From: Cyanophora paradoxa CCMP329
Lineage: Eukaryota; Plantae; Glaucophyta
Reading direction: 5' to 3'
DNA: 64,000 bases
NCBI GenBank assembly: GCA_004431415.1
Contig: QPMI01000034.1
Location: 1 to 64,000 of the forward strand
How positions within the stretch are numbered: the stretch's first letter is position 1; each line of letters starts with the position of its first letter. The translations under genes and the position numbers were made by a program. The notes beneath the pieces were generated by a model that made no database searches, was not told the DNA's origin, and saw only the letters and a list, made by a program, of their open reading frames with translations. This document shows, piece by piece, positions 4,141-49,689 of the stretch.

Positions 4141-6748
4141 CTACTCGACGGGCCCGTCGTCGTCCTCGGGGTTGCCCTCGTCCTCGGAGGGCTCGAACGT
4201 GTCGTCCGGCACCCGGTAGATCCGCACCACCGGCTGCGCGACCCTCAGCCGCCAGCCAGCGGCGCGGGCGGGGCGGGGCGGGCGGGGCGGGGCGGACGTT
4301 GGCGGGGTCCTTGAGGATGAGGTACTTGCCCTCGGGGTTCGCCAGCAGGATGTCCAGCACCTTCTTGAGCACGCCCCAGCCGTTCGAGAAGTTGAACTGC
4401 GCCGCGTCAGGCCTCCGCGCCGCCGCGGGGGGCGCGGGCGGGGCGGCCGCACGTTGATGCGGGTGGCGAACTCCTTGGGCCGGTAGAGTTGCACGGCGAG
4501 GATCGAGTGCCGGTATGGGTCCCGCGGGTGGATGCGCGTCACGAAGCTGCCCGCCCGTGAGCGGCGGGACGGGGCAGGGGGCGGGGGGCGGGGGCGGGGC
4601 GGGGGCGGACCCGAGCTTGATCTGGGCGACGCCGGAGAGGAGGGCCTGGGAGGCCCAGCGGGCGACCTTGGAGGCGTTGTTGCGGATCTCCGTCGCCATC
4701 ACCGACCCGCTGCGCCCCGCCGCCCCGCCCCTCGGCCCCGCGTCCCCCGCGCCAGCGCGAGGGGAGGGACGGGGAAGCGGACCGCTGGGACTCGAGCTTG
4801 GTGCGCCAGTCGGTGCCGGCGTACTTGGGGTCGATCTCGTTCAGCGCCCGCACGCTGCCGGCCGCGCCGTCAGTGCCAGGGCGGGGCGGGGCGGGGCGGG
4901 CAGGCGGGGCCGGGGGGAGGGACCTGAGGAACTGGGGCCCGGCGGCCTCGCGGGCCTCGGCGGCCTCGGCCGAGGGGGCGACGGTCGAGTCCTTGAGGAT
5001 GCCGTCCACCTCGCACCGCGCCACGATCTTCACGCCCTGCGCACACGACCCGCTTTCGGCCCCCCGCCCGCACGGCACGCGCGGGGCCGGCCGCGGGGGA
5101 CGGGACGCACGCCGATCTCCCACATGCGGTACCGGTAGCCGACCGAGGCGACCTGCTCGCCCTCCGTCGCGAAGGGGTTCGGCCGCCCGAAGTCGTGCCC
5201 GTTCTCCACACCCGCTGCGAGGACCTGCGCCGCCGCTCGCCGCTGCCCGCCGGGCCGGGAGCCGCGGGGGGCCGACCTGCTGGGAGAAGTTCTGGTTGAT
5301 CATCGTCGCCTCGCGGCTGATGCTGCCCGGCGAGTTGATTCCCTCCCCCGTCTTGTCGTCCGCCGCCGGCAGCGCGATCTCCGACCCGTTCTCGCACACC
5401 GTGAGCAGGTCTGCCGTCGCCTCAGCCCGGGCGCAGCGAGGCGATGCCGGGGCGCGCGCGCACCGACACGGGAGCCGGGCCGCTTGTCAAGGAAGAGCTT
5501 GTCGCCCACGCGCCGCGCGACGAGGTCCCACGAGTAGACCGAACTGGCGCCGCACGGTCGGTCCTGGGTGCCGGGATGGGGCGGAGGGGGCGCGAGCGCA
5601 CCGGGGGGCGGCCATAAGGATGGAGAGGATCTGATCGGTAGCGTAAACCTGGCCCTTGTTCGACTCCGCCAGCTGCGCGAAGGAACTGTAAGGAGCGCGC
5701 GAGGAACGAACGCCGCGCCTGCGGCGAACCTGCTGGATGACGGGATCGTCCGACGTTGTGACGTTGTGGAAGACGACGCTCTCGTAGCGCTGCAGCGGCT
5801 TCGGCTGCTTCGTGGTGATGCGGTCGTAGGTCTTGTCGTACGCGCCAACAGCACCGGCGGACAGACTGCGGGCGCGGCCCCGTCAGCCGAGCGCCGAAAC
5901 CGAAAAGACACCACATATTCGCACATTTCCTTCGCCTCCGGAATGTTGTCTACGGTCAGCTTCTGCAGGCCCGCGAAAGCAATCTGATCGACGACCTCCC
6001 ACTCCGGCTTCACGTCGACGGAGCTCTCCTTGAACGCCGAAGCGCGCTCTGCAGAGACGGAATGAGCCGCTTTCCAATAAGTTTGCAACCGGAAACCCAG
6101 CCGCACCCGCAATACGATCACGGCCATACCAGCCCCTCCGATCCCGAGGCTGGAAGCCACGGCGCGTGGTTGTGTTCTCCTGGTCCTTGCGCACGAGCGC
6201 GGACGAGACCTTCTGGTAGCGCCCACCGCGGAAGCCGCCGCGCCAGTTCTGGCCCTTGGGCGCAATAACCTTCGTCGACACGGTCTGGAACGTGTCGTCC
6301 TCGCCGCCTAAGACGCAACGCATCAGCGCTGACGAAGAAAGAAATGCAGCGCTAACGCAAAGCTAAACAGCGCTTGATAGGGGCGGGCGTGAGACTCTAG
6401 CCGGGGCGGTGATCGTGAGCGACGCACGGGGCACGACGCCGCGGAAGCGCGCCTCCGCCTGCCAGTCTGCCGCCTTGCCGAGACGACCCGTCCGCTCGAA
6501 CGCATCGAAGAAAGGCGGGAGGCTCTCGACAAGGTCCGCCGGCGGCTCATCCGGCGGGCCCCAGCCCTCTGCGGCGTGAGAGGATGCCAAGCGTCAGCAC
6601 ACAGGCACACCGGCGCATCGAATGGCGACCGCTATGAACTCCTCGTCGCCCGATGGCGCGAGGTTGCCACATCGCGCCGGAAGGAGCGCTTCGCGCTGAC
6701 GGGCCACGCACCCCTGTTATCAATGCATCCGGGAACGTCGAACACCAT
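4141..6748 (-). CDS. EIF3D: Translation initiation factor 3 subunit D
   Basis: MVFDVPGCIDNR|EGWGP..RLGKAADW, SSVDVKPEW, SVYSWDLV..LFLDKR, EATMINQNFSQQ, ALNEIDPK..DWRTKLESQR, ATEIRNNASKVARW, GKYLILKDP. Confidence 0.95.
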
Positions 6749-46017: not shown

Positions 46018-46958
46018 CTACTGCTCGGGGAGGGGCGTGCCCGGGGCGCCGATGGCGTCGAGGGTGAGCCAGACGACGTGGGCGTTCTGGATGCGGAGGG
46101 TCTGGGCCTGGCGCGGGAGGGCGCCCCACGTCTCCCCGGGCAGGCACAGCTTCCCCACGTCCGCCAGGAGCTCCGCCAGGGGCACGCCCTCCCGCCGCGC
46201 CCGCGCCACGTCCCGCACCACGTACTCCAGGCCCTGGCCCCGCCCCGCACCCCGCGTCGGCGGAGCGCCCGGCGGACCCCGGCCCGGCGCGCGCCCCCGC
46301 TCGAGGGCGCCGGCACCTGTGCGGCGGGGTCGTCGAGGCGGGGCTCGCTCCAGCCGCGCTCGCGGGCGTCGTGGGGCCGGTAGCGTTCGTGGCGGAGGGC
46401 GGCGTAGACGGCGAGGATCCAGCCGTTGCGCGCCACGCACTCCTCGTCGTCCAGCCGGATGAAGCTGTCCACGCCGTCGTCCCCCGAGCTCAGCTCGTTC
46501 CCCGAGATCTCCAGCCGCAGCGCCGGCAGGCTGAAGCCGTGCAGGTACGCCGCGATGGCCGCCTCGCAGAAGGCGCGCAGGCAGCCGAAGTAGCGCGGAT
46601 CGCCGCGCCGCGCCTGGCCCGTGTAAGTGTACACGAAAGCCTTTCGGAAGGTATTCTCCAGTGCGAGCGTGATAATCTCTCCGGCGTCCTGCGGCGCCGA
46701 CAGCTCCGCCGCCACCTCGGCTGGCCTCGGTCGCGGTCGAATTGCTATTTGGAGCGCGGTCGGTATCCGTAGCGTGCTGGTCGGAACAAACTCCGTTCGC
46801 GGTAGCAGCCGGCCCTCTAGTCGCCGCGCTCTTGCACGTGCGCGCTCAGAAGCGCTCGGCCGAGGCGCGCCCGGGCACACCAACGAGCTAGCAAGTGCGC
46901 ATTGAGAGGGAGCTGAGTTGCGGCCGGCCGCCGGCGCGGGGCTCACGAAGCCGGGCAT
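46018..46958 (-). CDS. Probable plastid-targeted uncharacterised protein
   Basis: N-terminus MPGFVSPAPAAG.. is Ser/Ala/Arg-rich with Phe at position 4, followed by a globular region (LENTFRKAF..LRAFCEAAIAAYLHGFSL..RNGWILAVYAAL). Confidence 0.6.
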
Positions 46959-46960
46959 GT

Positions 46961-47106
46961 CGATCGCTAGCTAGCCTGGCTGCACTCAAGACTTGTCACG
47001 AGCTTACGGTGGTTGCGCCGCTATGTGGCCACTCGGCGGCTATGGCAAGTGCTTCGGAGCTGCGCTGGCGTTCCGGCGAAGCTGCAGTTTGATCCCCCCT
47101 CGGCGG
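46961..47106. repeat. ~146-bp dispersed repeat copy 1 (occupies the divergent promoter between the 46958 gene and RPL18)
   Basis: Reverse complement nearly identical to 62903-63056. Confidence 0.95.
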
Positions 47107-47142
47107 GTACAGGAGGTTCATTAGGGGGATACCGGCGAAAAC

Positions 47143-48065
47143 ATGGTGCGGGCCCGCTCGCGCCCCGCGCAGCCCGGCGAGGCGTCGGGGCGATTCAAGA
47201 ACACGGACTTACGATGCCCGCCGCGCTTTCCGCGTGCAGGGTGTCGATCTCGAAGCGGGTGGGCGCAAGAAGAACCAGGGCCGCACGGAGCCCGCGAGCC
47301 AGAATGTCTACATTCGGCTCCTCGTCAAGGTTAGCCAGAACGACCCGGAAGCCCGGGATCCCAAACGGACCTCTCGTCGATCACGCACGCCGTGCTAGTC
47401 CTGGCGACAGCAGCGGCCACCTGGCGATATGCGCGACTGCAGCACAAAGCTAGAAGTCTAGATTACGCTAGCGCACCCCGCAGCGATCCCGTGCATGCCC
47501 TGGTCGCTCACGCTCGCCGCAGCTGTACCGCTTCCTTGCGCGGCGCACGGACTCCAAGTTCAACAAGATCATCCTGAAGCGCCTGTTTATGAGCCGCGTC
47601 AACCGGGCCCCGATCTCGCTGTCCCGGCTCGCCCGCCTCCTGAAGGGCAAGGGCGACAAGATCGCCGTCATTGTCGGCACTGTGACCGACGACGTGCGCC
47701 TCCTGGACGTCCCCAAGCTCACGATCTGCGCTCTGCGTGTCACGGAGACCGCCCGCGCCCGCATCCTCAAGGCCGGCGGCAAGATCATGACCTTCGACCA
47801 GCTGGCCCTTAAGGCCCCCACTGGCGCCAACACCCTGCTGCTCCGCGGCCCCCGCTCGCGTGAGGCCATCAAGCACTTCGGTGCCGCTGGTGTGCCGCAC
47901 TCGACTGCCAAGTGAGCTCCCCGCCGCCGCCTCCGCCGCACTCCTCGTGCTCGCTATTGCGTAGCGCAGCCCTAACGCGTGTTGCGCAGGCCCTACGTTC
48001 GCTCGAAGGGCCGCAAGTTCGAGCGCGCGCGTGGCCGCCGTGGCTCGCGTGGCTTCAAGGTATAA
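47143..48065 (+). CDS. RPL18: 60S ribosomal protein L18 (eL18)
   Basis: ATG-only first exon, then [30 protein letters not shown]|[61 protein letters not shown]. Confidence 0.98.
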
Positions 48066-48313
48066 GCGGGCAGCATCCTCCGCTAGAGACTTGGTCTCCC
48101 CATTCGCCAGTTCTGTGCCGCACCGATCCCCCGGGATCTGTCAAATCGTCGAGGTCCCTCATCTCAGTATTCCGGATGCGAGGCTCGCGTTGGGGCTCGA
48201 GGGTTCGGGCGGGTGTTGGGCTGGGGCCTCGCGACGCGACGGGGCCAGCCGCTCTCCCTTCCTCTTGCTTCTTTCACTTTCGCCCCGCGTTTCCGTCGTC
48301 ATTTTGGTTTTCC

Positions 48314-48465
48314 TCTCCCACAACGGTCCGGCTGGTCTAGCGGCGTGCGAACACACGTCGCGTTGGCCTTGCTGATCTAACCCATGTGGGGAACATAAAC
48401 GGAAAGCAAAAAGCACTTGTGCTCGATTTCTATTGACAGCACGAGTCGTCGTCTTTCCCACATCA
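48314..48465 (+). ncRNA. Box H/ACA snoRNA, copy 1 (two predicted LSU rRNA pseudouridylation pockets)
   Basis: Hairpin-H(ACATAA 48393-48398)-hairpin-ACA(48460-48462). Pockets ACGGTC/AACCCA and CAAAAAGC/CGTCGT lie 13-14 nt from the boxes and are complementary to conserved LSU sequences. Confidence 0.88.
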
Positions 48466-48526
48466 TGCCTTTGCAGTATCTGCCCCCCGCTCTCCCAGTT
48501 CTGTTTTCTTTCTGGCATGCCGATGC

Positions 48527-48679
48527 CACCTCGTAACGGTCCGGCTGGTCTAGCGGCGTGCGAACACACGTCGCGTTGGCCTTGCTGATCTAACCCATAC
48601 GAGGCACACAAAAAGGAAAGCAAAAAGCACTTGTGCTCGATTTCTATTGACAGCACGAGTCGTCGTCTTCCCGACAATC
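48527..48679 (+). ncRNA. Box H/ACA snoRNA, copy 2 (paralogue)
   Basis: Same pockets, H box ACACAA 48606-48611, ACA 48674-48676. Basal stem is CCTCGTA/TACGAGG (compensatory relative to copy 1). Confidence 0.88.
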
Positions 48680-49210
48680 CCCACTGATCTCCCGTCGAAG
48701 TCATAGCACTGCCATCTACCTTACCCGCATGCCTAATGCCTAGACCATTGGCATCGGACTGCTGGATTTGTATGCAGCGGACGCCGCCCCAGCGCCTGTC
48801 AAGTGCACAGTGGGTCTTCGAAAGCCGTGCAGAATTCGAAGGCGCTTAGACTTGATTCGTCATGAAATACCCTACAGCTGCAGGGATTCAACAAAACAGG
48901 CTAGTTGTACGTATACAGAGAACATGAAAATTACAGGAGAGGAAACTGTGAATACAAGGGAGAAAGTTCGCCCAAGCTAGAGAAATTGGGGCAGTTAGCT
49001 GCAGGCGCTTGAACAATGCCGCGGTGCGAGCGATGTCCGGTCCTTCTTGAGCAATGACGAGCGAGCTCTTCGATGTCGCATCAGCTGCCCCCCGCCGCCT
49101 CCGATCGATCGCGCGCCGCCTCCCGCCTCCGCCGCAACTTGTCAGAGCTGCAGAAATTTAGACGCGGCTGCGAGCACCAAATTCAGCGGGCTGGTGCACA
49201 CCTGAAGCTC

Positions 49211-49689
49211 TTACTTCGCGACAGCGCTGGCGGGCTTCTTGTCGTCGCTGTTGTAAACGCTGAGGCGGCCCTCGCGCATGACCATCTTGTCCTCGGCGTT
49301 CGGTGCCTTAGAAGGCGTCGCCGCTGCGCGTTCGAACTGTCAGAGAGCGGCTGACAGGAGTAGCTAGCATTAAGCTCCCGCAAAAAGCGCACGTTTCGAG
49401 CGCAGGAGCGGGAGCGCCGAGATACCCTGCGCGTGCCGTGAGCACGTCAACACGGCGGGGCGCAAAAGCGCCGTGCGTGGCGTACCAGAACGAGCGCCGT
49501 GCCTGTGCAGCGACAAGGTGGCACACAAGGCGCGCGGCGTTGCGTTAGCTGAGAGCCGGCGAGCCGGCATGGCGGCGGCGCTGAGGTGGCGCGGGGCGGC
49601 GCAAACGTACCAAGAGCCACGTAGAGCTTCTCCTTCGGGCCATTGGACATGCTCCACATAAGCGATTGTGTCTTCTTGGCGTCCGCCAT
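49211..49689 (-). CDS. ~80-aa single-pass membrane microprotein
   Basis: Four exons splice in frame: MADAKKTQSLMWSMSNGPKEKLYVALG|TALVL|GISALPLLRSKP|ATPSKAPNAEDKMVMREGRLSVYNSDDKKPASAVAK*. Confidence 0.6.

Follow-up and report, generated by a model that had tools for sequence, protein, structure and literature searches.

Tandem candidate box H/ACA snoRNA genes beside eL18 in Cyanophora paradoxa, predicted to guide two known pseudouridine sites of LSU rRNA

What is encoded by the two near-identical units that follow the ribosomal protein gene eL18 (RPL18) in the glaucophyte Cyanophora paradoxa CCMP329, and on what would their product act? The units lie on contig QPMI01000034.1 (assembly GCA_004431415.1), of which positions 1 to 64,000 were analysed; we call this whole 64-kb stretch, with a G+C content of 60-84%, the window. 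A preliminary description had read the units as ~150-nt direct repeats specifying tandem H/ACA snoRNA paralogues, each with two guide pockets directed at LSU rRNA. We delimited the candidate genes as follows.

48316-48465, plus strand: candidate H/ACA snoRNA copy 1, ~150 nt, with ends placed at the start of the basal stem and at ACA plus 3 nt
48529-48679, plus strand: candidate H/ACA snoRNA copy 2, from repeat alignment, fold, boxes and pockets

The repeats themselves were readily confirmed. A search in direct orientation found 48322-48385 to equal 48535-48598 letter for letter, and 48397-48455 differs from 48611-48669 only at one hinge base (C at 48400, A at 48614). Aligned in their register of 213-214 nt, the copies have a mean column identity of 94% over ~150 nt. 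Two 22-nt core probes matched exactly twice each in the 64 kb, with no match expected from shuffles, and thus gave no third copy of the unit within the window. Similarity between the flanks of the two copies was at shuffle level (111 and 73 of 500 shuffles scored at least as high as the real flanks). Taken with the two exact matches of each core, this confines the similarity to the ~150-nt RNA unit.

We then compared folds, boxes and stems, which were located at the following positions.

48316-48322 (TCCCACA) with 48385-48391 (TGTGGGG), plus strand: copy 1, basal stem of hairpin 1, from stem comparison
48393-48398, plus strand: copy 1, H box ACATAA, read from the sequence, 14 nt past the first pairing guide base of pocket 1
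48460-48462, plus strand: copy 1, ACA box, read from the sequence, 13 nt past the upper stem of hairpin 2
48529-48535 (CCTCGTA) with 48598-48604 (TACGAGG), plus strand: copy 2, basal stem of hairpin 1, from stem comparison
48606-48611, plus strand: copy 2, H box ACACAA, read from the sequence
48674-48676, plus strand: copy 2, ACA box, from repeat alignment

Both copies fold as hairpin, H box, hairpin and ACA in minimum free energy and centroid structures, the layout that the preliminary description had proposed, and at ~150 nt they lie in the 120-160 nt range of eukaryotic box H/ACA snoRNAs. Folding energies of the whole RNA were -56.2 kcal/mol for copy 1 and -51.4 kcal/mol for copy 2, with z scores against dinucleotide shuffles of -3.8 and -2.8, respectively, and single hairpins scored between -2.7 and -3.4. 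Forcing the guide bases to be single-stranded left basal and upper stems unchanged in both copies, so the layout is stable with open pockets. The H boxes ACATAA and ACACAA both fit ANANNA and sit in a single-stranded hinge; as had been noted, they vary only at an N position. In both copies, ACA comes after the 3′ basal stem, and the similarity between copies ends just past it. We found no UGAG CAB box in the apical loops, which read CGAACA and TTCT, and accordingly rejected assignment to the Cajal-body H/ACA RNAs (scaRNAs).

The 5′ basal stem was said to differ between the copies on both sides while still pairing, and this proved correct. Although 7 of its 14 bases differ, all 7 pairs are kept in each copy (100% pairing). 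Three pairs have changed on both sides and one on a single side (U.G to C-G); the two-sided changes are all transition pairs, for which a wobble intermediate is possible. Sliding the stem partners against each other lowered pairing from 98.8% to 35-44%, and we calculate that full pairing of two unrelated 7-mers is to be expected about once in 1000 cases. A covariation shuffle control reached the observed value in 69 of 500 shuffles, a proportion that has a floor of ~1/8 and low statistical power because there are two sequences. Since we found no orthologue, all of the covariation stems from these two paralogues.

Could one of the copies, most likely copy 2, be a decaying duplicate of a single functional gene? 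Copy 2 carries an A.C mismatch (48617 with 48670) in the 3′ basal stem of hairpin 2, beside the ACA box, and folds less well than copy 1 by both energy and z score; the two are indistinguishable in the RNA contigs described below. However, both boxes and both pockets are intact in copy 2, and its 7-bp 5′ basal stem is perfect and compensated. Because that stem has been restored by compensatory changes, selection on copy 2 itself is implied, and we judge decay of one copy to be quite unlikely. We conclude that the units are probably two functional paralogous genes for one ~150-nt box H/ACA snoRNA.

What such an RNA would guide depends on its pockets, whose arms were assigned as follows.

48323-48328, plus strand: copy 1, pocket 1, 5′ guide arm ACGGTC, pairing with rRNA GACCGU on the 3′ side of the target U
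48375-48384, plus strand: copy 1, pocket 1, 3′ strand ATCTAACCCA, of which 48379-48384 (AACCCA) pairs with rRNA UGGGUU
48407-48414, plus strand: copy 1, pocket 2, 5′ guide arm CAAAAAGC, pairing with rRNA GCUUUUUG
48447-48452, plus strand: copy 1, pocket 2, 3′ guide arm CGTCGT, pairing with rRNA GCGACG through one G.U
48536-48541 and 48592-48597, plus strand: copy 2, arms of pocket 1, from repeat alignment and constrained fold
48621-48628 and 48661-48666, plus strand: copy 2, arms of pocket 2, from repeat alignment and constrained fold

The identical core blocks make the pockets the same in both copies, as the preliminary description had stated. It had also placed them ~14 nt from the boxes, and in both copies 14 nt separate the H box in hairpin 1, and 13 nt the ACA in hairpin 2, from the guide base whose partner adjoins the target U. 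The target U is therefore 15 and 14 nt from its box, within the published rule of 15 ± 1 nt (PMC8522698). Duplex energies between guide and target ranged from -6.7 to -7.9 kcal/mol per arm. The pairings themselves stood with a qualification for each pocket. In pocket 1, ACGGTC and AACCCA match the target, but the 3′ strand is 10 nt long; its last 6 nt pair, and the 4 nt ATCT are left unpaired beneath the upper stem. The 3′ arm thus abuts the upper stem, as in textbook geometry, in hairpin 2 and not in hairpin 1. Reading pocket 1 in the textbook register, with the 3′ arm taken directly from the base of the upper stem, yielded no credible rRNA target and was rejected. In pocket 2 the target is matched, but the pairing of CGTCGT with GCGACG needs the one G.U.

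The uniqueness of the targets was assessed on rRNA of other eukaryotes, used as a stand-in since no rRNA was found within the 64-kb window. We scored every U (1,400-2,800 per unit) in eight complete eukaryotic rDNA units comprising SSU, 5.8S, LSU and spacers. Pocket 1 (ACGGTC/AACCCA) had one outstanding site with 6+6 Watson–Crick pairs and a score of 12, against 6 to 9.5 for the runner-up. Pocket 2 (CAAAAAGC/CGTCGT) likewise had one outstanding site, with 6+8 pairs including the G.U and a score of 13.5, the runner-up reaching at most 8. The two LSU sites named at the outset thus emerged as the unique best matches in all eight units. We numbered the sites by aligning them ourselves to well-known anchor residues and compared the result with published tables. 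Target 1 corresponds to human U4502, Arabidopsis U2945, yeast U2955 and E. coli U2586; it is the third U within GGGUUUAG and sits right after the equivalent of E. coli U2585 in the peptidyl-transferase centre. In helix 89, the U that follows GCGACG is target 2, which corresponds to human U4401, Arabidopsis U2844 and yeast U2854.

We examined conservation of the sites in 108 eukaryotic LSU rDNA stretches from metagenomes, picked by a 27-nt pattern of the sarcin–ricin loop that is independent of the target sites; 59 of these had enough upstream sequence for the check. The 14-mer at target 1 was exact in all 53 LSU genes with intact rRNA, the six exceptions being interrupted or chimeric. The 16-mer at target 2 was present in 51 LSU genes and varied only at the unpaired base (U in 37, C in 14). 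As a separate observation, in six metagenome LSU contigs (L018, L067; L011, L052, L058, L072) the rRNA stops upstream of the sarcin–ricin loop. Two of them break at or just downstream of GACCGUCGUGAGACA, a segment overlapping target 1, and four of the six have one non-rRNA sequence in common; these may be rDNA-specific insertions or chimeric contigs.

Both pockets land on conserved uridines that are experimentally known pseudouridines. In human 28S rRNA, mass spectrometry identified an m3U-U-Psi-A-G fragment at 4500-4504 with Psi4502 at 100%, and a Psi-C-G fragment at 4401-4403 with Psi4401 at 89% (Taoka et al. 2018, PMC6182160). Pseudouridines have also been mapped at U2945 and U2844 of Arabidopsis 25S rRNA, which were aligned there with human U4502 and U4401, respectively; the guide snoRNA is listed as 'nd' for both (Streit & Schleiff 2021, Suppl. 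Table 2, PMC8351944). Pseudouridine mapping played no part in the first prediction of the targets and therefore provides an independent check of both. Human U4401 has been attributed to SNORA21 (PMC5552212). The site of target 1 is an orphan in vertebrates and Arabidopsis: vertebrate Psi4502 has no assigned guide (Deryusheva, Talross & Gall 2021, PMC8522698), and a literature search, with snoDB and snoRNABase outside its scope, found no assignment after 2021. Pocket 1 fits yeast 25S rRNA exactly, and U2955 is not among the modified residues listed for it; beside target 2, yeast has an A where pocket 2 expects G.

SNORA71 pairs at human 4502 and was inactive in yeast, and SNORA22 puts 4501, not 4502, into the pocket; the same study stresses that complementarity is not enough for activity and does not obey rules strictly, and that the structure of the upper stem can be decisive (PMC8522698). 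It could therefore be argued that the RNA is a genuine H/ACA snoRNA of which only hairpin 2 is active, hairpin 1 being an orphan, inactive or chaperone-like, and any pseudouridine at its site being the work of another guide or enzyme. The four unpaired bases between upper stem and 3′ arm, the lack of a target in the textbook register and the published cases of good pairing without activity at this same site (SNORA71, SNORA22/57; PMC8522698) would fit such a division of roles. Set against them are a perfect 6+6 Watson–Crick match that is unique in the rDNA units and falls on a conserved, fully modified pseudouridine, an H box at the distance that the rule predicts, and complete (100%) conservation of pocket 1 between copies whose basal stems have diverged. 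On balance we consider an inactive hairpin 1 unlikely. Because pocket 1 is atypical and pairing alone is insufficient for activity, we nevertheless rate pocket 2 as the more secure of the two predicted guides.

The same matches bear on whether there is an RNA gene here at all. An intergenic tandem DNA duplication with coincidental hairpins, boxes and rRNA complementarity would account for the absence of a family match, of an orthologue and of mapped RNA ends. It would, however, have to produce by chance two independent, unique rRNA matches of 12 and 14 bp, which by our own arithmetic are expected at the order of 1e-4 and 1e-5 per rDNA, respectively. Chance would further have had to put both matches on known pseudouridines, correctly spaced from H and ACA boxes that are themselves in the right place. 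The units moreover lose their similarity precisely at the RNA borders and have a compensated stem. We regard coincidence as highly improbable, and two genes for an H/ACA guide RNA remain our preferred reading. The interpretation in the preliminary description is therefore supported in silico, in the H/ACA guide features that can be read from sequence and in unique predicted targets on mapped pseudouridines.

We next placed the pair in its genomic surroundings, which comprise the following features.

47143-48166, plus strand: eL18 (RPL18) gene, with start codon 47143-47145, exons 47240-47329, 47523-47911 and 47990-48166, stop codon 48063-48065 and poly(A) site at ~48166
48167-48315, plus strand: spacer of 149 nt that separates copy 1 from the poly(A) site of eL18, with low-depth RNA contig cover
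48851-49693, minus strand: 3′ part of a spliced, convergent neighbour gene, from CT..AC joints and contig ends

eL18 was identified by translation and by matches of single, unjoined exons to Pfam PF17135 (E = 1e-65 and 1e-07). Its exons were taken from GT..AG joints and its mRNA end from contig ends with an A-tail in four public runs, which contain RNA, since they show GT..AG-spliced forms. The gene has features of its own. Its first exon ends on the start codon (ATG, 47143-47145), which is followed by a 94-nt GT..AG intron (47146-47239), which interrupts the coding sequence immediately behind the initiator Met. Its stop codon lies inside AAG/GTATAA (48060-48065), a good-looking splice donor that is unused in the four runs.

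The convergent neighbour has a peculiarity too: between two joints at 49427-49606 (minus strand), the four RNA runs contain 11 letters, AGAACGAGCGC (read on the plus strand), which suggests an 11-nt micro-exon within a 178-nt gap. The product of this gene starts MADAKK..., and its transcripts stop at about 48851-48875. The snoRNA pair lies between that end and the poly(A) site of eL18 and is therefore intergenic; it begins ~150 nt past the poly(A) site on the same strand as eL18. Residence in a host intron was rejected, as no spliced joint flanks the snoRNAs and AAG/GTATAA at 48060 is unspliced in the four runs. A bacterial-type scan, which is not directed at the relevant promoter type, recognized no promoter or terminator in the spacer (48167-48315). 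Upstream of both copies, at 48244-48258 and 48482-48496, we observed a 15-nt motif (GCC..CCGCTCTCCC, 13 of 15 positions identical) followed by a T-rich run. It lies 58 and 33 nt from the respective snoRNA and may be fortuitous, a remnant of the duplication or an upstream element common to both copies.

Contigs assembled from the RNA runs cover parts of the region, and carry no strand, end, level or copy-specific information. One contig (run X1) leads from spliced eL18 exons through the snoRNA region into the spliced neighbour gene, and low-depth contigs from two other runs cover 48163-48313 and 48535-48805. Since contigs with spliced eL18 and neighbour junctions run through it, the snoRNA region is present in RNA. 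All RNA contigs jump from 48321 to 48535, and none lies over 48376-48509. We rejected this 213-nt 'joint' as splicing: 64 letters fit both of its sides, which marks it as a collapse of the identical cores. A further low-depth X1 contig joins 47669 to 50091 (AT..TG ends, side 22) and is most likely an assembly chimera.

The preliminary description had supposed the RNA to be probably unannotated in this lineage, and our comparisons make that plausible. Across the whole window, Rfam gave no snoRNA family at gathering score; when 48100-48900 and 46800-48100 were searched at E ≤ 10 or E ≤ 1, it returned only chance-level matches to a miRNA, a frameshift element and an IRES. Curated families (for example SNORA21, snR10 and plant snoR) were set aside, since none of them matched 48100-48900 at its gathering threshold or even at E ≤ 10. 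In the literature we found no work combining Cyanophora with a snoRNA catalogue. A search for orthologous snoRNAs through relatives of eL18 found none; apart from a EukProt protein that is 100% identical to the eL18 exon, the next best relatives reach 79% identity, with 82% the maximum among those listed, and they come from contigs of ~1 kb or from transcripts.

Among characterized RNAs, one of the closest parallels is human SNORA21 (ACA21), the counterpart of yeast snR10. Both it and the Cyanophora pair are two-hairpin H/ACA guides at a ribosomal protein gene (an RPL23 intron for SNORA21, beside eL18 in Cyanophora), with one pocket for the same helix-89 uridine, human U4401. The two differ in that SNORA21 has no sequence or structure homology to the Cyanophora pair detectable in Rfam at E ≤ 10, and in that it is intronic, whereas the Cyanophora pair is not. 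Its other pocket also differs: SNORA21 is said to guide an A-loop pseudouridine in addition to 28S Psi4401 (PMC5552212), whereas the other pocket of the Cyanophora pair is directed at the U4502 equivalent. SNORA71 and SNORA22/SNORA57 resemble the pair as H/ACA RNAs complementary to the same UUUAG segment beside the U2585 equivalent (PMC8522698), but pocket 1 of the Cyanophora RNA puts the third U, the 4502 equivalent, in place with 6+6 perfect pairs.

A different likeness is one of gene arrangement. H/ACA clusters are intronic in Chlamydomonas and rice, and plants also have non-intronic polycistronic ones. The Cyanophora pair shares with these green-algal and plant clusters the tandem arrangement of near-identical guide copies tied to a gene of the translation apparatus. 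It differs from them in that its copies have diverged, compensated basal stems and are not fully homogenized.

From these elements we can outline how the pair may work. Transcription would proceed on the eL18 strand, either by read-through past the poly(A) site or from an own promoter giving a two-gene precursor, and exonucleases would trim the transcript back to the protein-protected snoRNAs. We put this scheme of non-intronic expression forward tentatively. The RNA would presumably accumulate, each copy assembling with Cbf5/dyskerin, Nop10, Nhp2 and Gar1. The internal loop of each hairpin would then pair with LSU rRNA on both sides of one U and deliver it to the active site of Cbf5. Hairpin 1 would thereby direct pseudouridylation of the U after the U2585 equivalent (E. 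coli U2586, human U4502), and hairpin 2 that of the helix-89 U (human U4401 equivalent). The rRNA of Cyanophora paradoxa itself would have the target sequences and the pseudouridines, and pocket 1 would work despite its four unpaired bases.

A bolder extension concerns other lineages. If hairpin 1 is a real guide of the Psi4502/Psi2945 type, its atypical pocket could explain why predictors have missed such RNAs, and guides of the same geometry could exist in plants and perhaps animals; taken as a whole, this is a speculative proposal that we hold to be rather improbable. A single undiscovered plant snoRNA might carry both pockets.

With this analysis, a deep-branching member of the plant lineage gains a well-supported predicted guide RNA. 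Being placed just past the poly(A) site of a ribosomal protein gene, outside any intron, the pair departs modestly from the snoRNA gene layouts already known. The locus rises slightly above the ordinary by combining a stem compensated within one genome with a pocket predicted to guide the orphan pseudouridine next to U2585. That pseudouridine is fully modified in human ribosomes and among the few in rRNA that lack an assigned guide; with a candidate whose pocket is defined, if slightly unorthodox, the gap left by the missing guide becomes testable.
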